From: Amoebophrya sp. A120
Lineage: Eukaryota; Protista; Dinoflagellata
NCBI GenBank assembly: GCA_905178155.1
Contig: CAJINV010000003.1
Coordinates: 1,359,557-1,423,556 of the forward strand
DNA length: 64,000 nucleotides
Direction: 5' to 3'
This document shows, piece after piece, positions 27,456-48,508 of this stretch; positions within the stretch are counted from its first letter, which is position 1, and each line of letters starts with the position of its first letter. The position numbers and the translations under genes were made by a program. A model generated the notes under the pieces. It saw nothing but the letters and a program-made list of their open reading frames with translations. It was not told where the DNA came from and did no database searches.

Positions 27456-30400
27456 ATGTCGGCGATTTCCCTGCGGTGCGAGCTGGAAGCGGGTGGGGCC
27501 GACTTTGACGCGGTGGTGGCCCGGCATGAGAAGTTCCTGGAGGCCCTGGCGACGCAGCAGCCGGCCGCTCGGTGGTGCCCCAGCTCCGCCAGCCTGTGCG
27601 TGACCAAGCGCCGCAAGCTGCGGGCGGCCGACCTGCGCGAAGAGCTGCAGCTCCCCTCCGAAGACCACGTGTACGACCTCTTTCACTGTTACCAGCAACA
27701 CAAACTCACGCAGCAGTGGCACCGGTCCGAGATCAACACGAGGGAACTGGACGAGGAGGACGTGGCGTCGTTTGACCTGTACGACCAAATGATACAGAGC
27801 TTGTCCACCCCCGCGGAGGGAGGATCTACTTCTACAGCATCTTCACAGGCGGCCCCGGCGCAAATAATCACCTCGTCCACTGGCGCAACAATAAATAAGT
27901 CGAGAATTATACAGCAGAACCAGCAGCGGGAATTGCACTCTTTAGCCCCGGAGGAGTACCACCGGCAGCTGCTGCAGGAACTCCGCTACTTCCTCCACGC
28001 CGAGCGCGTTGCAGTGCTGCAGACGTTTGCGCTGCTGGTTGGCGAGTTCGCGAACATCTCCACGGCTGCGTCCGCGAAGGCCGCACGAACCAGCGGGACG
28101 AGCTCCTCCTCGAGCAGTAGCAGCAGTAGGCTCCGAGCAAGCGTGAATAACAACTCCTCGTCGAACATGATGAGTGGAGCGCCATCTCCTGCAAGGTCGG
28201 GTGCCGACGTGCTGCGGAATTTTGTGTTGCGCAACTGGCAAAACATGGTGGAGCGCACGTACGAGACGTATGTGTCCACGAACAAGATGGACCCCAACGC
28301 GGGGGAGGATCTGCAGGTGGGGCTGGAGCTGCAAATTGCCAGCCTGGAAACTCTGGTCGTTTTCGTGCACGCGGCGGAGTCGCACAACATGGCGCTGGAA
28401 ATAACCAAGTCGTTCTCCTCAAACCCCTCGCACCAGGCAGTTCTGGTTTCGCGCCGCTCAACCATGCTTGAAATTGTGAACGACAGTAGAGAAACTACTT
28501 CAACGACTGAAGACGACTCTTTTTCTCAGCCGAAGATGACCCACACTGCCCCGCAAGCGCCGCCTGCCAACGCCCAGCAGCCACTGCAGCTGGGCATCAG
28601 TCTGCTGGACCTGTGCCAGAGCTTCGCGGGGACGCGGTTTCTCGGGTGTTCCCACTTTCTTCGTCCGAAGCTCGAGGGAGAGCTGTTTCAGAAGACGCAC
28701 CCCGACGCCCACTTGCTCCTGGCCGAGAACGACTTGCTCTACCTGCGGCTCGCGCAGCACCTGAGCGACTTGCAGGTGGTGTTGCTGTTGCAGATCCTGC
28801 AGGCGGCGGCGACGGTCCCGGGCATGGACTTGGAGAACGCGGAAGTAAAGCAAATCCACCAAGAACTCACCGATTACTCCGTGTTGTTCGACAAGTGCGG
28901 CCACAACGTGTGGGTGGGCAACGATTTTGCGGCGGACACGCTGAGCAACCCCATGGCCTGGGAGGAGCAGCACATGCTGAAGCAGACCAGCATTTTGACC
29001 CTGGGCTGGTTCGTGTACGTTACCTCGAAGCCGGACTACGCACCCCTGGTTCACCGGCCGGACACCGTGTTCGGACGGTACAAGCAGGTGTTGCGCAGCG
29101 AAAAGCTGGTGGCCTTTGCCCTGCAGGAGATCGTGCAGCGTTCGCGGCTCTTTCCGACGGACGCGGCGCACGCCCCGCCGAACGCGCCCTTGGCGCGCTT
29201 TTCCCGGCACCGCGTGCTGGCGTTTTTGGGCTGCTCCTTCCAGAAGTTCCACGACATCCACCGCATGGTCTTCGTGCAGTACTGCAGCCGCGTCGCGGAA
29301 ACGTTGAAGCTGGAAGACTGTCCGGTGCTTCTTCCGCACGGTTTGACCCTCGTGGTGCGGCAAGCATTTAGTATTTGTGGCGCCCCCGCCGGAACATCAG
29401 GAGGTTCATCTTCACCATCATCTTCGTGCAGCAGCGGTGTCGAGAGAGTGAAGAAACGCATTTGGGCACAGGACATCGCAAACCGTGCCGGGTTGCAGTT
29501 TCTGCTGGGACACATGGTGAACGACCTGGGCACCTACCTGCCGAATTGTTTGGATCTGCTCGCCGCCCTACTCCCGGGAACAGACAGTTTGGACGCGCAG
29601 AGCGACATGGTGTACGACAGTCTGATGCTTTTGATGCAGGAGACAAAAGTTCCGTCGTTCACCACACTGCTGCCCTCCGTGACCGACTGTGTGCGGTCGG
29701 CCAATCAGGAGACCGCGGAATTGCAACGCCCGGTCTACGTCGAGCACTTCTTCCTGCGGCAGTTTGGTGTGAGTTGCGCCCCCGTTTACGATGCAACGTG
29801 TACCGGGATGCGGGCCGGAACCCAGGGTCGGCTCCTCCGGAAGGCCGTGGTGGAGCCGCAACGCACCAAGCTGGAGGCCTCCGTGTGCGCCCACTGGCAG
29901 CTCGGGGCCGGCGAAGGGTTCTGCATGCTTCCGCTGGTTTTCACCACGCTAGACTCCTTCATCGACAAGTACAGCAGCGCGGTGGGCAGAAAGCACGACC
30001 CGGCGCTGCCTCCGTCCTCCACCCGGGACGCGTTCTCGGCCGACGTACAGTCTTTGAAGACCCACTTGATTGAGCAGAACCACATTTGCGTGCCGAGCAA
30101 CGTCGCGCTGTCCCTGGCCGCGATTCGGTTCGTGTGCAAAATGGTGATCGCCTTTCCCGACCGGTGGCAAAGCAGCGACCTGCACCTCGCGGTGTCGGCC
30201 GAGGGAAGGAAACTGACGAAAGAACCGACCTTGACGCTTCCCCTGTTCCAGCGGCTCTTTCGCCTATTTCTGTGCTGCAGCGCAAAACCGGAGTTTCGCT
30301 CCTTGGTGCCCTTAATTCTTCAGGCGATGGCCACGTTTTTCCAGGATGTGGAGGCAATAGCAAAGTCAAGAACAGGAGGAGCCTCAAGTAGTACTGCTGC

Positions 30401-33400
30401 CTCACAGCTGCACTCCATGTACGACCCAGAGCCACGACCGGTATTAAACGACACAGCATCCACGTTTCACCAGCAGAGAACTACGTCAAGCACTATGATG
30501 GAAGAGGACCACCATCCGCAGCTGCAGACCACGACCAACCTCCAAGCGCAGTACGGACGCCGACGACGACGGGGAGGTGGACTCGCACCCGCGAGAGTTT
30601 CTACAACCGGACGGGACCACGCCGACCACTACGAAACGGCAGTCCCAGACCAACAACGAGAGGAACTACTAGTACAACCCGAACGCAAGACCAACAAGGC
30701 GCGGGCGTTTTCGCTGCTGCTCCTGCTCGAGCAGAACCAGTCCCAGTTCTTTGCCTGTCTGCACCAAAACTTGAACGCGGAGAGGGCCGAGGGGCACTAC
30801 ACCATTTTGCTCGCGACACTGAAGTTTTTCGAAACGATGTTTGACGCCGTGCCCCCGGCCAGCTGGGGAGCCAACTGGAACTTGCAGGCGGCGGCCACCC
30901 TCAACGTGGGCGGGGGCGGGGGGACCGCGATTCGCACCCTCGACGACCTGGACCAGTCGCGGCACACCGTGGTGCGGGAGGCGCAGTTTCTGCTGCTCGA
31001 GGAGATCCTCAGTTTCGTCCTGGCCTCTGTGTTCGCCAAACACGGCTCTGGCTGGGCGTACGCCGGGGAGAAGCACGACGCGTCCTCCGTGAAAAACGAC
31101 ATTGGAAAAGTTTGCATTCGCATCGCAACGGTGAATTTCGTCTCGCTCTTCTTCTGCAAAGACTTCTTCCAAGACGCAAGTAACATTCTCTCCACGCGCG
31201 CGGACGCGGATCTGGTCAGCGAGCTCTTCAACACGCTGCGCAAGCGCCAGCACCGGTTATTGCAGCTCTTTGCGGAAAATGCGGTCCTCCCGCGGGTGCT
31301 GCAGACCCTGGTTTGCGAGATGATGGTTTTGTCCTGTTCCGGCCTGTCATCCGTTGTTACTGAGAAGTCCAGCGGAGGAACATCATCGGCAACCGGCGCT
31401 TTGGTAGTTTCAACATCCGGAGCAAACGCACGCCCAAATGAAGGGTCGTCGTTACTGGACGAAAGTGCAACAAAGAAGCTCTCGCGGCCGGTGGTGTTCG
31501 GGTTCACGAACACAGCGCTGCTGCAATCGACGCCCCCGTCCGCGGTCAGCGACTACGAGAACACCACGCGCATCATCCACCGCTTTCTCTACGCGGCAAA
31601 TTGGATGCCCAACGTGGCCAACGGCACCAGGGACCAGTTCCGCGCCACGGAATACGAGAACTTCTTCAAAACGAAATCGCAGAGCGAAGACTTCTTGCTG
31701 ACGTCGTTGGATTTTCTGCTCGCGCTGCTCACGATTTGCTTGCGGCCGAGCGAGGATCTGGTCAACAAGGAGGCCGTCCGCGAGCTCGAGGAGTACTTGC
31801 TGTCGCAAACCAATACCCCCTCCTGCAAGCGGCAGTACTCCGTGACCTGCGGAGCCGACAACATCCAGTGCGAAGTCTTTTCCGTGGATTTGATCAAATC
31901 GCTCTTTCACCTGTCCTCCTGGAACACGGGAGGTGGTGGCATATCGTCCACCGCGGGCAGCACCACCAGCTCCATTGCGGTGGCCATTCTCGCGGCACAG
32001 ACGCTGCAAAAGATGTGCCTTCTGTGGGAGCAGACGGACACGTTTGCAGCTAGTAAGCACCTGCTGTCCGAATTTCTCACCTTCAACTGCGCCCCGGCCT
32101 ACCACGCGGAAACGGCGAAGGAGAAAACGAAACTGGAGCTGCAGATGCTGCTGAAGGACATCACCGACGCCAACGCGGCGGCAGCGGAACCTGCGTTGCC
32201 TGCGTTGCCTGACGGGAAAGAACCGACAGAAGTAAAGGCGGTGGAAGACGCGAAGCCGCCACAAGAGGGCCAAGCGTCGGGGCTGTCAGCAAGCAGAGGA
32301 GTTTATCTCTCCGGAGGACGTCCAAATAAACCGAGCGTGCATCTCGGGGCGTCCATTGTCCAGAAGTGGCTGCAGATGATGGTCAGGCCCGACCCAAAGC
32401 TGGTCGAGCTGCGTCACGCCTTGCTCTCGCTCGCCTGCGTGGGCGTCCGGACGCAGAGCTCGGTCTTCCTCACACTGGAAGCGCGCCCCGGGCAAAATCT
32501 CATCCGCAAATGCAGGCAGATCGTGGAGGAGTGTTTGCGCAGCTTTCCAGTGGAGAAGAGCGGCGGAGGGAGAAATACGACACCAGACGACCTCGCAGCG
32601 GAAAGTACACGACCCACCGTCGACAAGAAACAGAAGGAGAAGCTCCGCTGGGTCGCCAACAAAGTGCCTTTACTGTGGCACGCGATGCACCTGCTGGGCG
32701 AGATTGTGAACACGCTCTTTGTGGATTTCGAGTCGCTCGAAGACGTCTGGCTGCTTCTCATCAACGTGCAGGGGAAGGTGTCGCAAATCATCAAGGAGTG
32801 TTTGCCGTATTACCTTGACGTAACCGCGATGTCCTCCCCTCCAGGACGTCGAGGGAATAACGACGAGCAGTATGATCATGCTAGTAGGGTTTTGAAGGTA
32901 AAATACGCGACGCAAATTCGGTCGCAGCAGTACTACTTCTACCTGGTGCAAGTCGTGAAGGAGATCCATTTTCTCGCGTACGTGGGCATGGCGAAGGTTT
33001 CCCAGTGGATGGACACGAAGAAGTCCACCATTGCGCAGCTCCTGGACAAGTCCAAGAGCTTCAAGAAGCTGCAACTGCTGGTGATGGCGGTGCTGTTCGA
33101 CGAGCATGACTTGTGGTCCCGAGACCCAGACGCCGCAAACCAAGCGGCCGCGGCGGCCATGAACAACACCGGTGGACCGTCGGCGAACACCTACATCTTC
33201 TCCCCGCGCACGCGCGCAGCTGACCAAAGAATGGAAGTAGAGCAGGATAATTATATGCAAGAAGCCAATAACGTGATAATGAACGCGAAAGACACAACTG
33301 ATTCCAGCATGTTCGTACCTCCGTCGGCGTACACCGCGAGCCGGGAGCGGTTGTTTCAGCTGTGCCACAAGGCGGGAATTCAGGACGACGTGTACGCAAA

Positions 33401-36400
33401 CCTGCTCTCGCGGGACGACATCACGAAGCAAGTGACGGGGACGAGCTACCGCAACATGCTGAATAAGGAGGTGTGCGAGGACTTGGACGACTACATGTAC
33501 GGCAACTACTCGGGCGTCAGCAGCGCTTTGCTCCTGGAGCACCACGTGGTCGGGGGCACAAACGCATTTGCTTCCGATTTCAACGACGACCCAACAAGTT
33601 TGATGCAGCAACTTCCCCGGCAGCAGCAGCAGAGACTGTTCCGAAAGAATGACTTCGGTGGGCAATTCCGTTCGGGTTTCGGGACCGACAGTCTGAGTCA
33701 CGACTACCTGGCGAAAAACACGGCCTACGGCGCGATTTCGCGCGGAATGCGCGCGACCCGGAGCTTGTCGGACGTAAGTGTGGTCCGGTCGGAGACCGTG
33801 CGTCGCTTTATCGCCGCCTTCGACCGCTTGGAGCGCGAACAGCTGACTAGAAAAAGGCTTCTTGTTGGGACGGGCGAATCCGCGCCGATATCCTCCACGT
33901 CCGCGACACTGCGAACAAAGACCAGCCTGACGCAGACCCTGAACCTTCTGTCCTATTATTACGACGTGAAAACTGGCGGCAGCGCGACGACCGGTGTTCA
34001 GAGACTCGACCCCATGGGTGTTGATGTTACCATGACCACGAGCAACAATCCAACCCCGTTTCGCACGCCGGAAAGAGGCGGATGGAACCACAACAGTACA
34101 GTTTCTAACAACCCGTACAACGACAGCAATAGATTCGGCGGCGGCTCCTATTCACCTGCGCACAGGAGTTGTAGAGCAGCAGTGTCCGCTGCCTCGTCAA
34201 AGCAGGCGTTGCTGGCCGAGGCCGACACCTTCGGGAACCTCTCGGCCATCGTGAGTCTGCAGCACGAATCCCTCGCAATGTATTCGCAACTGGTGTTGGC
34301 GGTGTGCGAGCTCGCCTGTGCACTGGCCAACGCGCCGAAGAACGACGATCCGCAGATGGTGCACGACCTAGTGTCTCCGCTGCTTCCGATATCCTGAGTA
34401 AAAACGTACCCACACCAGAGTTGTAATGCAAATCTGCATGCTGAAAATGTTTCTCATGCGGAGCTCCATGAGAAGCATTTTCTAGTCGTGTTTTGCAATT
34501 TGTCATGCTCGAATCAGCATGGTATGCTAGATCTGTGATGCTGCTGAGCTAGCTCAATCAGCACTACACTACGACTCCAAATTTGTCATGCAAAACAGCC
34601 AAAACTTGTGGATTTGTCTAGCCGATTCCCCATCTTGACTCTGGTGTGGGTACGTTTTTACTCAGGATATCCGAAGCTGATCCCCTACATCTCCTTGCTG
34701 CTGCACGACCACCAGATTTATCAACTGTAAAAATGTCTGGGTCTGGAAGAATCCAACTTGTCATGCTGATTTTGGATTCTAAAAAAATCTGTATTGCATG
34801 AGCAGCCAAGAGAGTCCAAGTTTTGCTACACGAAGAGAGCATTTGTCATGCGGTATAGGCATCAGGAAGCCCTCACAAAATCTGTGATGCTAGGGCATGC
34901 ATCACAGACATCAAGAGTCATGCAAAATGTGCATGACAAACCTGGCAATCTTCCAGACCCAGACATTTTTACATTTGATAAGATTCTCACCGATCCGAAA
35001 GCAGGAGGTTCCGGCGTCTCTACGGCACTCCTCAACCGGGCTGCAACAAGCACTTTGCACGACTGCGCGAGCGAGGCGGTGCGCAAGCTGTTCCCCGCCC
35101 CGTTGCTCCCGACGCTGAGCATGTTTTTGACCATGACCACGCGCATCCTGCAGTTCCCCATGTTCTCGAGCCCGGCGTTCCAGTTTCCCCCGCTCGCCAA
35201 GTACTTCAACGGCGCCGTGCGGGTGCCGGAGGAGATGATCAGCGTGCTGAAAATGACATCCGAGGAGTGCACGCAGGGCAAGCTGTTCTCGCGGCAGCTG
35301 GCGCAACTCCTGAAGGTGTTGGTGCGGCAGCTGCAGAGCCAGGGCGTGAAAGACGTCCGGTTGCACAGCGACGTGCGGGAACGAAGCGGCGGGCAGCAAT
35401 TCGCATGGTCTCGAACGGCGGCGCACCTCGTGCAGGACCGCAGCATGGTGTTGGACGCGTTCGCGTCTACTTTAGGCTGTCTGTTCCAGCTCGTGACGGC
35501 GTTTCTGCCCGAAAACGCGGCCAGCGAAAGAACCACGAGCGTTGAGCAGGAAGCCGAGATCGAGGAGATCTTCGTGCTGGTGCTCGAGAGCTGCACGGAA
35601 TTGCTGCAGGTCCATCACCAGCAGACGGGCATGCCACTCGTGTCCGACCGGGTCTTGAACGAAAGCGACGATAATTTGTTCGACGATCGACTCCGCGGCG
35701 GAGAACAGATGTCAAAACTAGCGACTCCCCGGGGCGGTGGTCCTGCGCGAAAAAAGCAGCGGCGTGGCGTCGACTCAGCGATGTTGAATAGTAACGGAAG
35801 TCAAAAGGAGAGAACTACCAACTATATGACCGGCGCACAACAAGGTAGAAGTACGTTGACAGCGGCGCAGTCGGACGAGGAACACTACGTTGCACAAGCG
35901 GCAGCGAACAAGAGTCCCTCGTCCTACCAGTCTTGGTTTGCGAATTCGAGTGTGACCAGCGCCAGCTTTGGCAGCTTGATCCTCGCCATGGTCCAGCGAA
36001 TCACGGGCATCGTTCCCGTCGAAAAGTACTACGATTTGTACGTGTCCTTGACCACGGTGCTGATGCAACCCACACCCAATGGCATGTGGCAGTTCACCAA
36101 CTCCGCGGACCACGGGTCGTCCCGGGCGAAGGGCCCTTCCGCGGCCAAGCTCCTCCTCGCGGCGAAGCTGAACAACGTGCGCAAAGCAGTGAACGGCGAG
36201 CTGGGTCTGGGCGGCTCCATGAGTCAACAACATCTTGACGGAAACACTAACAGCAGCAGCGACGGCGGGGTCTACTTTGCAGAACTGCAGTTACCCGCAT
36301 CCATGTCGATCACTGCGGAAGATAACGTGCGGAGAAAAATTGTGCTGGATCGCGAACCTGCACTGCAGCGAATACTCGCGCGGCGGATCGACGCGTGCGT

Positions 36401-40624: not shown

Positions 40625-42811
40625 ATGGTGGACACTGCGCAGTACGCTATGGCACAGATGGAGCTGACTCACGAGTCGGGCGGCGTGTTGGGCGCGCACG
40701 ATGTGGTCGGTAGCACCTTTTACATCGCCATGAACGCCATGCTTGCGTGCACCGTGTTCTTCTTGTACGAAACAAAAACTTTTGTCGCTGATTATGTCGC
40801 TTGATGCATGTTGTGATGAAATAAGGACAGCAGCACTATCAAAATGGAACTAAATCCCGATTTACAAGCAGAAGGCATGTATCACTATGGGACTTAACTC
40901 GAAACGAGAAGGATAGATGCAATTCCACAAAACAAAGTATTGTCACGAGGAGATTGAATCGATTGACAAATCGTTTTTGCTTTCATACCGTCCTCGAGCG
41001 GGACAGCGTTCCCAAGCAGTGGAAGAAGTCCATCACCGTCGCCATGCTGGTTACGGGCGTCGCCACATGGAACTACTTGTACTTGATTTCGTTGAGTGAT
41101 TTGCATTTTCGTTTTAGATTGGCATTTAGATTTTAGCTAGCTGAATGTGGATTTGCATTTAGAGCTGTAGGTTTGCATTTAGACTTCGACGAAAAACTAC
41201 GCCATGATCAATGTCCCTCCCGTAGGCTGAGCAACGCTTCTTTGGCTTCTTGGCAATTGCGACTCACCTGAAATACTCCCAGGTTCATGAAGACCACGTG
41301 GGTGCGCACGCAGAACTCCCCGACCGTCTACCGGTACACGGACTGGTTGATCACCGTGCCCCTCCAGATTGTTGAGTTCTACCTTATCCTCGCCGCCACA
41401 ACGAAGGTGTCCTCCGGTTTGTTCTACAAGCATATGGAAGGAAATCTTTTGATCGCATCTGTCAGCAGATTTGTACAGTAGGTGTCGTGTGCTTGTAGTT
41501 CTGGTACATACTATACTTTTGCTTCTGCGCGAGAAAATAGCAGGAGGTCGCATAGAACTGCCCTTGTCACAGCGAGCACCTGCAATTTCAGTATTGCGAT
41601 TGATTTCATGAAAAGAGCTGACAGAGCATTAAGATTCTTTCTCTGCATACGTCTTTTGGTTACCTCCGTTATTATGCTCGTCGGTGGCTACTTGGGTGAG
41701 GTTGGTGCCGTCTCCGTCCTGTGCGGCTTTGTCATCGGTAAAAGAGATATTTTCTTTTGTTTCGCGGCAAAAGACCTCTTTGTCGCCGTGTTTAATGAGC
41801 AATCACCATGTGATGTACTAAGATCATTGAATTTCCCAAGGCGGTACTGCCGAGATAAGGCCGTTGGCGGTGTTGTTACAATGAGCCGTGAAATCAAAAA
41901 CTACATCAATCAGGCATGTTGGGCTGGTTGTACATCTTGTTCGAGATCTTCGCGGGTGAGGCCGCCGCCACCTCCGGTGCTTCCACCAACAAGGCCGCCA
42001 CCGCCGCCTTCAACACCTTGCGAATGATCGTGTCCGTCGGCTGGTATAGATTTTGTCTGGTTTATTTGGATTCTGCATCTGCTCTTGTAGACGTAGGACT
42101 GCATCAAACAATAGGATTCTTCGGCTTATGCAGGAAGCTTATTGTACCGCGATGCCGAACAAGAGGCTGTCTGTCAGTACATTTTGCAGCCGCCAGTGCA
42201 TGGACGAAAAGGAAATAAATTCTTGTCCGAAATAAAACGAAATGTTCTGCATTCTGCACCAATGAATGGGCGAAAAATTATATTTTGTGTGCTGTCACAG
42301 TCACATTCACAACGGCATCATCCGTTTTACTAGATGTTCGTTTTTAAATCTCCCACCATGCGCATTAAATTCACAGGTGCATCTACCCGATCGGGTACTA
42401 CCTTGTGTACTTGGGCCCGACCTTCTCCTACCACTCCCAGAGCTGCGTCAACGTCGTCTACAACCTGGCGGATGTCGTCAACAAGGGTGCCTTATCAAGC
42501 GCAAAAATGTCTGGGTCTGGAAGAATGCATGTTTGTCATGCTTGTCTGGCATGAGTCCTAGATCTGTCATGCACGTTACCCAAGAGCTCCATTTTTCTGT
42601 GATGCAGGAACGCACTTTGTCATGCAGCATAAGCAACACCTAAGAGGTCAGAAACTTGTCATGCTGAGCCAGCATTTGTGGCCTCATCATGAGACGCCAC
42701 CCAGCATCACAAGTTTCCAGACCCAGACATTTTTGCATTTGATATGCCTTCGGCCTCTGCATCTGGGCCGCCGCCAAGTCTGACGTCAAGGCCGGCCAGC
42801 TGTTGAAGTAA
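40625..42811 (+). CDS. Proteorhodopsin (type-1 microbial rhodopsin, DTE proton-pump motif, Q105 blue-tuned), 255 aa, 7 exons
   Basis: Exons 40625-40764, 40992-41078, 41283-41431, 41654-41737, 41914-42043, 42377-42491, 42749-42811 (768 nt). Motifs FFFLERD, TGVATWNY, SPTVYRYTDWLITVPLQIVEFYLIL, GYLGE, GWCIYPIGY, YNLADVVNKGAFG (retinal-binding Lys). Confidence 0.95.
40766..40987. mobile_element. Old TIR intron (rhodopsin intron 1), non-canonical
   Basis: tacgaaacaaaaacttttgtc / gacaaatcgtttttgctttcata; TSD decayed; removing element + 5 nt restores VFFFLERD. Confidence 0.75.
41433..41649. mobile_element. Old TIR intron (rhodopsin intron 3), non-canonical
   Basis: tatggaaggaaatcttttgatcgcatctgtcagc / gctgacagagcattaagattctttctctgcata; removing element + 5 nt restores LFYKLLVTS. 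Confidence 0.75.
42493..42744. mobile_element. Introner element, family B, two codons after the retinal-binding Lys
   Basis: tatcaagcgcaaaaatgtctgggtctggaa / ttccagacccagacatttttgcatttgata; TSD tgcct; removal gives NKGA|FGLCIW. Confidence 0.95.
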
Positions 42812-46292: not shown

Positions 46293-48508
46293 ATGATTCC
46301 CGTCCGACGCGCCATCGTCTCTGTCAGTGACAAGGCAGGCGTTGCCGACTTTGCATCCTTTCTCCAGAAAGAATGTGGCACAGAGCTCCTATCTACGGGT
46401 GGGACGTGCAAATTACTCCAAGAGAAGCAGATTCCAGTGACGGAGGTGTCCGACTACACGGGCTTTCCGGAGATGATGAGTGGGCGACTGAAAACGCTCC
46501 ACCCGAAAATCCACGGGGGCATACTGGCGCGCCGGGGAACCGACGATGAGGCTCTGGCGTCGCAGGGGATCGGGTTCATCGACCTGATCGTTGTGAACCT
46601 GTACCCTTTCGCCGCCACGATCGCGAAACCCAACTGCACCCTAGAAGATGCGATCGAGAACATCGATATCGGCGGACCGACCATGCTGCGCGCGGCGGCG
46701 AAGAACTGGGAGCACGTTGCGGTGATCTGCGTGCCATCGTTCTACGAGAAAGTGAAGGCCGATTTGGAGAAGAATTTCGCCAGTTCTGGCAAATACACGA
46801 TTTCGCGGGAAACGCGCTTCCAGCTAGCACGGGCTACGTTTGAAGCTACCAGCCAATACGACGGCATGATCGCGAACTACCTGGGAGCCCTGCCACCGCT
46901 CTCGGCCGCCGACAGCGGCGCGGGTGGCAACGACAGCGCGGATGAAAAAAAGGCAGAAAAGCAGCAGTTCTCGGAATTCTTCTACAACAGCCTGAAGAAG
47001 AAGCAGGACCTGCGCTACGGCGAGAACCCGCACCAATCGGCGGCGCTGTACTCCGAGGAAGGATTCGCGAAGCCGTCCGTGGCGACCGCTGAGCAACTCC
47101 AGGGCAAGGAGCTGTCTTACAACAACATCGCCGATGCAGATGGCGCGCTGGACTGCTGCCTTGCGTTTGATCCCAAGTACAGCTGCAAAACCTAAAAGCG
47201 TACTTAGTCGTACCTAGTCGCGTTTCATCCATCGTCCAGTAATATGCGTTTGATGTTTTTGATTCTTACGGCCGATGCTGCTGATTTTCCGTAGTTTTAG
47301 GCTGAGTTTTTAAGTAACAAAAAATGAAAAGGGTACCCTGCTGCGTGATAGTGAAACACGCGAACCCGTGTGGCGTTGCCGTGAGCGAAAATTCGCTGGT
47401 GGAAGCCTACGAGAAAGCGTTCCAGACAGATACGACCTGCTCACGTGCTACAGTCTCAAACGTTACAATTGAATTCGGATTCTGTCTACTTGCATGATCA
47501 GCATATGAGACACACAAATCGTTCCGCTTTCTGCAATGCAAAGTTCGCCGGCTTCCAGTGCGGTTTGGGGCTCCGGAACTTGTCATGCGCAATCCTGTGC
47601 GAGTAAGGCAGACCATGCACTTTTTGCATCACAGAGTTCCATTTCTATCAGTAACGTTTGAGATTGTATCATCTGAGCAGGGTATAACAGACCCGACCAG
47701 CGCGTTCGGCGGGATCATCGCGGTCAACCAAGAATTGAACCTGGAAACCGCCGAAAAAATCGTGAAAAACCAGTTCGTGGAGGTCATCCTCGCGCCGACC
47801 GTTGCGCCGGAGGCGTCGGCAGTGGTGGCGACCAAGAAGAACGTGCGTTTGCTGGCCTACGCAGGAACAACAAGCAAGCCAACGACCACTACCGGCACTT
47901 CTGTGAAGGAAGAGCTAGAGTACAAGAAGATCCGCGGAGGATTGCTCGTGCAGACGCGCGATGAAGAGCCGCAGGACATCACTCTGAAGGTGGTAACGGA
48001 GAAACAGCCCTCGGAGAAAGACATGGAGGATTTGAAGTTCGCCTGGAAGGTGTGCCAGTTCGTGAAGAGCAACGCGATCGTGTACGCCAAGGACGGTATG
48101 ACGTACGGAGTGGGTGCGGGGCAGATGAGCCGTGTGTTTTCCAGCAAAATTGCTGTGGAAAAAGCAGCGGAGGCAAAGCTGGAGCTGCAGGGGTAGAAGT
48201 GCTGTGGTTACGTTCTTTTTACGCTACTAACTTCTACTGTGATGCTGCAGCTGTGCGTTCGGTATGAGCGAATGATCTCTCATGTACAGATCGATGCGCA
48301 AGCAAAAAAGTCTATCTTCTATATCAGCGCTGCTATGGCGTCGGACGCCTTCTTTCCATTTCGGGATGGCATCGACACGGCTGCGAAAAGTGGAGTTGGC
48401 TGCATCATTCAGCCGGGCGGGAGTATCCGAGACAAGGAAGTTATTGACGCCGCCAATGAACACGGCATAGCCATGGTTTTTACTGGTTGTAGGCATTTCA
48501 AGCATTAA
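46293..48508 (+). CDS. purH: Bifunctional AICAR transformylase/IMP cyclohydrolase (bacterial-type), 554 aa
   Basis: Exons 46293-47176, 47332-47429, 47691-48192, 48328-48508. Motifs [101 protein letters not shown]. Confidence 0.97.
47431..47686. mobile_element. Introner element, family E, in purH
   Basis: tacgacctgctcacgtgctacagtctcaaacgttac / gtaacgtttgagattgtatcatctgagcagggtata; TSD acaga; removal restores the conserved D-PTSAFGG. Confidence 0.93.

Follow-up and report, generated by a model that had tools for sequence, protein, structure and literature searches.

A window of 64,000 nucleotides (nt) from contig CAJINV010000003.1 of the parasitic dinoflagellate Amoebophrya sp. A120 carries, at positions 40625-42811 of its plus strand, a complete rhodopsin gene made up of seven exons and six introns, as was established by tblastn in combination with a scan of the exon junctions. 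Splicing of the exons by script gave a translation identical to the 255-amino acid (aa) public protein P0002, followed by a stop codon. An original prediction, made from the letters of the window alone, had placed a complete gene with six introns between these same start and stop positions, and it was right in all of these respects. P0002 is identical to CAD7938991.1 and corresponds to gene model GSA120T00001574001; its record is titled "unnamed protein product [Amoebophrya sp. A120]".

In the list of open reading frames (ORFs) of the window, the rhodopsin region is visible only as fragments. When the Pfam family Bac_rhodopsin was matched exon by exon, exon 3 scored 34.4 bits and the remaining exons stayed under the cut-off. 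The use of such a single-exon scan as stand-alone proof of the gene was rejected as insufficient, as all exons except the third are weak. The frame of exon 3 alone matched the solved structures of blue and green proteorhodopsins with E values of about 1e-16, as compared to about 1e-3 for xanthorhodopsin. P0002 was recovered by a word-index query with a 181-aa open frame containing exon 4 (exon part only), and all full-length protein comparisons presented below were made with this public record.

Relationship to the proteorhodopsins

Upon searching the sequences of the PDB with P0002, the blue proteorhodopsin Med12 (4JQ6) was found at 269.8 bits, with residues 19-249 of P0002 aligned to residues 2-229. 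The blue proteorhodopsin HOT75 and the green proteorhodopsin of SAR86 scored 231-237 bits, whereas Gloeobacter rhodopsin (6NWD), psXR (9WFA) and xanthorhodopsin (3DDL) reached only 84.7, 82.7 and 69.4 bits, respectively. The protein thus groups with the proteorhodopsins and is not closest to the xanthorhodopsin/Gloeobacter type (270 vs 69-85 bits), in agreement with the prediction of a proteorhodopsin-type protein with DTE and Q105, unlike the xanthorhodopsin-like pumps of most described dinoflagellates. P0002 also carries a precomputed match to PF01036. In an AlphaFold model made with a 34-sequence alignment (predicted local distance difference test, pLDDT, of 88.3), the helices follow the seven-helix rhodopsin pattern. 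Proteorhodopsins came out on top when this model was used in Foldseek, with a probability of 1.00 and target-normalised template modelling (TM) scores of 0.82-0.96.

The residues R93, D96, T100, Q104, E107, D229 and K233 of P0002 are equivalent to R94, D97, T101, Q105, E108, D227 and K231 in the numbering of green proteorhodopsin, which is used below for comparisons between proteins. All seven had been predicted to be intact, as had the motifs SPTVYRY, EFYLILAA and YNLAD, and all are present in the sequence. The DTE pump motif is thereby found together with R94 and with D227, which pairs with D97 as counter-ion, and Gln occupies the blue-tuning position 105. The set is kept throughout the clade to which P0002 belongs: R94, D97 and T101 are present in 78/78 members scored, D227 and K231 in 77/78 (with a gap in the remaining one), E108 in 76/78 and Q105 in 71/78.

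The likeness to the bacterial proteins is closest for Med12 and HOT75 (4KLY/4KNF). These share the seven-helix fold with P0002 (target-normalised TM of 0.89-0.93), and R94, D97, T101, Q105, E108, D227 and K231 are all kept, although identity in the structural alignments is only about 50 %. P0002 differs from both in being the product of a eukaryotic gene with six introns, in the absence of a signal-peptide-like stretch from the N-terminus encoded by exon 1, and in lacking the Asp-His-Trp triad that spans neighbouring protomers in the bacterial pumps. On the basis of its sequence, the gene is predicted to encode a bacterial-type proteorhodopsin acting as a blue-light proton pump in a plastid-less parasite. 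The expected absorption maximum, near 490 nm, is derived solely from residue 105.

Introns and residence in the genome

A GT-AG reading is possible for introns 2, 4 and 5, but not for introns 1, 3 and 6. Intron 6 contains an element of 252 bp with 30-nt terminal inverted repeats, the arms of which are 93 % complementary. Copies of the direct repeat TGCCT(T) border the element, which is inserted two codons past the retinal lysine. Owing to the direct repeat, the 3' boundary of exon 6 is ambiguous within positions 42487-42493. At least 39 other full-length copies of the element, 93-95 % identical, are present in the genome (40 candidates were scored of 2307 first-look matches). According to the genome paper of strain A120, the plastid has been lost, and non-canonical introns and elements termed "introners" are unusually abundant (Farhat et al. 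2021; PMC7789003). Intron 6 has the properties by which Amoebophrya introners were defined there: it is non-canonical, ends in inverted repeats, is bounded by short direct repeats that span its junctions with the exons, and exists in many copies. Within intron 2, an 18-nt direct repeat occurs three times at positions 41113-41183, each copy ending in GCATTTAGA.

The intron positions after residues 154 and 197 are shared with the paralogue P0050, and the one after residue 197 approximately also with P0192; most of the remaining positions differ among the rhodopsin paralogues. The G + C content at third codon positions (GC3) of the coding sequence is 0.867, as compared to 0.74-0.76 in the neighbouring ORFs, and the introns have 38-46 % GC. 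The high GC3 is consistent with a strong codon bias. The assembly comprises 115.5 Mb in 401 contigs, and the contig carrying the gene measures 11.99 Mb. The rhodopsin gene is resident in the Amoebophrya genome, apparently since long ago: its position on a 12-Mb contig, its GC3 and its introner-type intron rule out contamination, as the original prediction had held on account of the introns.

Paralogues, orthologues and phylogeny

The A120 genome contains nine rhodopsin loci, counted from the PF01036 and P0002 matches that could be placed, and all nine belong to one proteorhodopsin-derived clade; a xanthorhodopsin-like copy was not found among them. Three trees were built, the most careful of which has 67 rows and was calculated under LG+C20 with posterior mean site frequencies (PMSF), using ultrafast bootstrap and the Shimodaira-Hasegawa-like approximate likelihood ratio test (SH-aLRT). 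Xanthorhodopsin-like sequences of dinoflagellates, the proteorhodopsin-type sequences of Karlodinium and Tripos, and the Tara unigenes lie outside the three trees. In the careful tree, the Amoebophrya rows (strains A120, A25, AT5.2 and Ameob2) form one clade with unnamed environmental rows, with a support of 88/91. This single clade is made up of 15 Amoebophrya rows and 18 initially unnamed ones, and among the latter P0197 turned out to be a protein of AT5.2. All named eukaryotic members of the clade that were identified are from Amoebophrya. Its core is supported by 100/98 (starred) and the group of insert-bearing paralogues by 96/92 (starred).

The clade lies within a group, supported by 99/95 (starred), that also holds Opitutales/Puniceicoccaceae of the Verrucomicrobiota, Neomarinimicrobiota and a cluster with a Marine Group III archaeon among its members. 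A phylogeny had been proposed as a check together with the original prediction; it places the clade among prokaryotic proteorhodopsins. The affinity to marine proteobacteria that had been suggested was not confirmed, since the nearest named relatives are those just mentioned and not specifically proteobacteria. The best named bacterial matches of P0002 are 57-59 % identical to it. A search with HMMER against 1.84 billion cluster representatives gave 1514 clusters at E ≤ 0.001, and no named eukaryote other than Amoebophrya was found near the clade among them. A scan of a limited collection of viral contigs did not reveal a relative, nor anything pointing to a viral vector.

Each paralogue group contains several strains of Amoebophrya, and the duplications must therefore be older than the divergence of the strains. 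As the nine A120 loci and the copies of three other strains fall into one clade, the transfer itself predates this divergence as well. The independent acquisition that had been predicted consequently holds at the level of the lineage, with one clade, nine loci and four strains, but not as an event specific to the gene in the window.

The orthologues of P0002 in A25 and AT5.2 are 88 % and 91 % identical to it, respectively. Orthologues of different Amoebophrya strains are on average only 48-51 % identical (Farhat et al. 2021; PMC7789003), so that this rhodopsin ranks with the most strongly conserved Amoebophrya proteins. A transcript from MMETSP belongs to the 90 % cluster of the AT5.2 orthologue, the transcripts of MMETSP0795 fall in other rhodopsin paralogue groups, and members of the clade also occur in the eukaryotic metatranscriptome data of MERC.

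A separate environmental cluster of the proteorhodopsin type, P0183/P0184, has one member in the MERC eukaryotic catalogue. P0184 is 314 aa long, of which about 78 residues form an extension at the N-terminus. A sequence from Pseudomonadota groups with this cluster, which lies apart from the Amoebophrya clade, and may represent a further eukaryotic acquisition.

Loss of the His75 and Trp34 partners

In P0002, Asn74 replaces the His75 and Tyr33 the Trp34 of bacterial proteorhodopsins. Asn is present at the position of His75 in 73 of 80 clade members (P0106 and P0114 included), and Trp34 is replaced by Tyr or Phe in about half of the members of the Amoebophrya clade. Among the bacterial relatives examined, Trp34 and His75 are both present in 127 of 127. 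The deep, insert-bearing paralogues of Amoebophrya mostly retain His75, which indicates that the change arose inside the eukaryotic clade. In bacterial proteorhodopsins, His75 forms hydrogen bonds with the acceptor Asp97 and with Trp34 of the adjacent protomer; it was described as conserved in eubacterial pumps and was taken to be the cause of the exceptionally high pKa of this Asp97 (PMC4374980). The loss of this pKa-raising residue, often accompanied by that of Trp34, would lead to a parasite pump that is active at a lower pH. The clade-wide loss of His75 and Trp34 has apparently not been described before.

Retinal supply

A locus with similarity to CrtI, CrtB, CrtYc/d and Blh is located on the same contig, approximately 245 kb downstream of the rhodopsin gene of the window. 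Pfam and NCBIfam matches (loci L094 and L098) place CrtI, CrtB, two lycopene-cyclase domains and Blh in this order on one strand. Two proteins align to the locus collinearly by tblastn: the complete CrtIBY of Aurantiochytrium (P0396, residues 49-1147) and a CrtI-CrtB-Blh protein of environmental origin with 1450 aa (P0401, residues 1-1441). The C-terminus of CrtI and CrtB are contained in one frame of 927 aa, and the second CrtYc/d domain and Blh in one of 898 aa; the remaining joins need introns, and a search limited to a certain range of lengths did not yield an annotated protein. In addition, three loci of RPE65-family carotenoid oxygenases (L088-L091) were found, the best at 154 bits. A search for a blh or carotenoid oxygenase gene had been suggested alongside the original prediction, and it was thus positive on both counts. 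The accompanying proposal of host-derived retinal is weakened by the collinear locus and the three RPE65 loci.

Fusions of the CrtIBY and CrtIBY-Blh type ("SAHNTO") are known from thraustochytrids, Thecamonas, Noctiluca and Oxyrrhis, and in the quadrifunctional protein of Thecamonas the domains follow one another as in the Amoebophrya locus (Rius et al. 2023; PMC10016063). The Amoebophrya locus differs from these fusions in its interrupted frames and long low-complexity inserts, and its transcription into a single messenger is putative. Amoebophrya is not mentioned by these authors, whose study covers Oxyrrhis and Noctiluca, and the linked CrtI-CrtB-CrtYc/d-Blh locus is apparently undescribed.

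Six-frame searches of the A120 genome did not reveal a polyprenyl synthase (PF00348) or an HMG-CoA reductase (PF00368); the same searches were positive in 14 and 5 of 14 control genomes, respectively. As this type of search works exon by exon, these nulls are weak evidence and are not read as absence; they may result either from fragmentation by introns or from a real dependence on isoprenoids of the host. A plastid isoprenoid pathway was reported to be absent from the parasite (Farhat et al. 2021; PMC7789003). To judge from its gene complement, the parasite probably makes β-carotene and cleaves it to retinal with enzymes of its own. In view of the nulls and of the reported lack of the plastid pathway, the precursor geranylgeranyl diphosphate (GGPP) or a ready-made carotenoid may still be supplied by the host.

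Relation to earlier reports

Among the rhodopsin unigenes of eukaryotes, Carradec et al. recognised a second large cluster, the consensus of which is that of a proton pump with a blue-tuning residue 105 (Carradec et al. 2018; PMC5785536). They attributed this cluster mostly to alveolates, including Syndiniales, and found it to be distinct from the green-tuned, xanthorhodopsin-like one. In their proposal, it was acquired separately and more recently, and photoheterotrophy is linked to parasitism. A blue-tuned proteorhodopsin of Amoebophrya was subsequently named by Coesel et al. (2021; PMC8017926), and a preprint of 2026 reported proton-pump rhodopsins in single-cell genomes of the marine alveolate group MALV-II. 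The gene in the window shares the pump consensus, the blue-tuning residue 105, the attribution to alveolates including Syndiniales and the non-xanthorhodopsin status with the cluster of Carradec et al. (Tara Oceans "Cluster 2") and the protein of Coesel et al., and it is almost certainly a genomic member of this cluster. Since the gene was annotated and its parasite rhodopsin family had been published before, its detection in the window is right but not new. The parts of these two reports that were consulted deal with transcripts and unigenes, and gene structure, paralogue number, the His75 change and a retinal pathway are not described there. Rhodopsin, carotenoid and retinal are not discussed in the paper on the A120 and A25 genomes (PMC7789003), and its supplement has no entry for the gene identifier, rhodopsin, carotene or phytoene. 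The inventory of nine genes with an introner insertion seems to be undescribed.

Among marine protists, xanthorhodopsin-like pumps occur in core dinoflagellates, Oxyrrhis, diatoms and haptophytes. They, too, are type-1 rhodopsins that pump protons and stem from bacteria, and it has been proposed that they use light to supplement the energy supply. Their cluster is green-tuned, with Leu105 in the consensus (Carradec et al. 2018; PMC5785536), whereas Gln105 is typical of the Amoebophrya clade. Ma et al. (2023) placed the classical dinoflagellate sequences under the xanthorhodopsins and noted blue pumps, with proteorhodopsin as the best SwissProt match, that are annotated to Karlodinium and Ceratium. 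Proteorhodopsin-like pumps may, for this reason, not be limited to Syndiniales among the dinoflagellates.

Interpretation and alternative explanations

It is very probable that the three parts of the present reading hold jointly: that the window carries an annotated gene of the proteorhodopsin clade, that the nine paralogues stem from one bacterial-type uptake, and that the parasite is likely to have retinal enzymes of its own. A single bacterial-type proteorhodopsin would have entered the Amoebophrya/MALV-II lineage before the known strains split and would have given rise to the nine A120 paralogues, with the acquired gene adapting to its host genome through a very high GC3, the gain of introns and the insertion of an introner. 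By analogy with the proteorhodopsin mechanism, all-trans retinal bound to Lys233 would absorb blue light near 490 nm, the proton of the Schiff base would pass to Asp96, and the base would be reprotonated from Glu107, such that one proton per photocycle would be moved outward or into a lumen. The retinal would probably come from the parasite's own enzymes, via the CrtI-CrtB-CrtYc/d-Blh locus. Several points weigh against this reading. The core and the insert-bearing paralogues are joined with moderate support only (88/91, unstarred). Expression of the A120 gene is evidenced indirectly, by transcripts of orthologues and by transcript-guided annotation. The loss of His75 is a departure from the bacterial archetype, and the transport properties may differ as a consequence. 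Finally, a source of GGPP for carotenoid synthesis is not accounted for by the six-frame search.

Three alternatives have been considered, two of which concern the origin of the gene. The 55-59 % identity of P0002 to bacterial proteorhodopsins might suggest that the locus is a bacterial contaminant or an artefact of the assembly. The chance of this is practically nil, as the intron and introner evidence already refutes it: the gene has six introns of the spliceosomal type, one of them a genome-wide Amoebophrya introner, lies on an 11.99-Mb contig with a GC3 (0.867) at or above that of neighbouring ORFs, and has orthologues in three further Amoebophrya assemblies or transcriptomes. Descent from the same ancient transfer that gave rise to the xanthorhodopsin-like pumps of dinoflagellates, without a separate acquisition, is conceivable in so far as microbial pump rhodopsins are all homologous and the trees hold no referenced xanthorhodopsin-like dinoflagellate sequences. 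It is nevertheless highly improbable, given that the bit scores to proteorhodopsins are three to four times those to xanthorhodopsin-type structures (the psXR entry included), that the Amoebophrya clade is nested with a support of 99/95 (starred) within bacterial and archaeal proteorhodopsins, and that the nine placed loci of A120 all belong to this clade and none is xanthorhodopsin-like. The two rhodopsin clusters are also kept apart by Carradec et al. (2018; PMC5785536).

The third alternative concerns function, namely that the protein is mainly a sensor of blue light, for instance one that informs the dinospore of depth or guides its phototaxis, instead of an energy-yielding pump. Blue proteorhodopsins of the Q105 type have slow photocycles, which once prompted proposals of a sensory role. 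The partners of the acceptor, His75 and Trp34, are lost in the clade, and signalling forms could be present among the nine diverse paralogues, some of which carry long extensions in a loop or at the N-terminus. A mainly sensory role is unlikely all the same: sensory rhodopsins usually lose the proton donor, whereas the full pump set with E108 is found in 76 of the 78 clade members, and among the genes adjoining the rhodopsin in the window there is neither a transducer-like nor a photosystem-related one. Carradec et al. (2018; PMC5785536) also read the consensus of the cluster as proton-pumping.

Starting from a bacterial-type pump with probable self-supply of retinal, a more specific proposal can be made. 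Possibly, albeit with somewhat less than an even chance, the nine triad-less blue proteorhodopsins and a quadrifunctional CrtI-CrtB-CrtYc/d-Blh enzyme encoded on the same chromosome constitute a complete, self-supplied rhodopsin photosystem of syndinian parasites, with an acceptor environment that adapts the pump to an acidic compartment or to the dinospore, which does not feed and is limited in energy. If so, Amoebophrya would be a photoheterotrophic parasite without a plastid. Few eukaryotic parasites of the ocean are as abundant as the marine Syndiniales, and a proton pump driven by light would, in such a plastid-less organism, tie parasitism to light harvesting, an idea raised by Carradec et al. 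(2018). For experimental work, the genomic copy offers a clean template, with exons that are exactly defined and a sequence that is highly conserved within its family, and the clade-wide change of His75 is amenable to mutagenesis. The nearby locus for retinal synthesis shifts the question from the source of retinal to that of the isoprenoid precursors.

Features of the gene, related loci and neighbours

The coordinates of the exons and introns, of the rhodopsin and retinal-related loci elsewhere in the genome and of the neighbouring genes are collected in Table 1.

Table 1 Features of the rhodopsin gene, its paralogues, the retinal-related loci and the neighbouring genes (plain numbers are positions in the window; G000 coordinates refer to contigs of the A120 assembly)
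Feature	Position	Strand	Remarks
Exon 1	40625..40764	+	Start codon, hydrophilic N-terminus, helix A; Tyr33 at Trp34 position
Intron 1	40765..40991	+	227 nt, non-canonical: GT..GT or TG..CG; no GT-AG option
Exon 2	40992..41078	+	Helix B; Asn74 codon 41071-41073 at His75 position
Intron 2	41079..41282	+	204 nt, GT-AG possible
Exon 3	41283..41430	+	Helix C: R93, D96 (41341-41343), T100, Q104 (41365-41367), E107 (41374-41376)
Intron 3	41431..41652	+	222 nt, non-canonical: CA..GT or AT..TC
Exon 4	41653..41737	+	Helix D
Intron 4	41738..41913	+	176 nt, GT-AG possible; after residue 154
Exon 5	41914..42043	+	Helix E, E-F loop, start of helix F
Intron 5	42044..42376	+	333 nt, GT-AG possible; after residue 197
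Exon 6	42377..42488	+	End of helix F, helix G; D229, retinal Lys233 (codon 42483-42485)
Intron 6	42489..42745	+	257 nt, non-canonical; introner copy plus one TGCCT copy
Introner in intron 6	42493-42744		
Exon 7	42746..42811	+	End of helix G, C-terminal tail, stop 42809-42811
Rhodopsin locus	Window gene, contig C3	+	P0002
Rhodopsin tandem pair	G000:C8:4242668-4245125 and 4249590-4251271		P0018, P0050
Rhodopsin locus	C3		Long-necked P0055
Insert-bearing rhodopsins	C8; C13		P0192 (C8); P0198 (C13)
Rhodopsin tandem pair	G000:C4:6130961-6131716 and 6135690-6136402		
Rhodopsin locus	C2		Orthologous to 726-aa protein of strain A25
CrtI-CrtB-CrtYc/d-Blh locus	G000:C3:1647167-1657159	-	
RPE65 locus	G000:C15:39574-43339		
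RPE65 locus	G000:C1:9261929-9263263		
RPE65 locus	G000:C2:10096515-10097572		
Large open frame	27456-34397	+	
purH-like gene	46293-47195	+	

The neighbours of the rhodopsin gene in the window include, on its upstream side, an open frame of 2313 aa without a Pfam match and, on its downstream side, a purH-like gene with AICARFT/IMPCHase and MGS domains.

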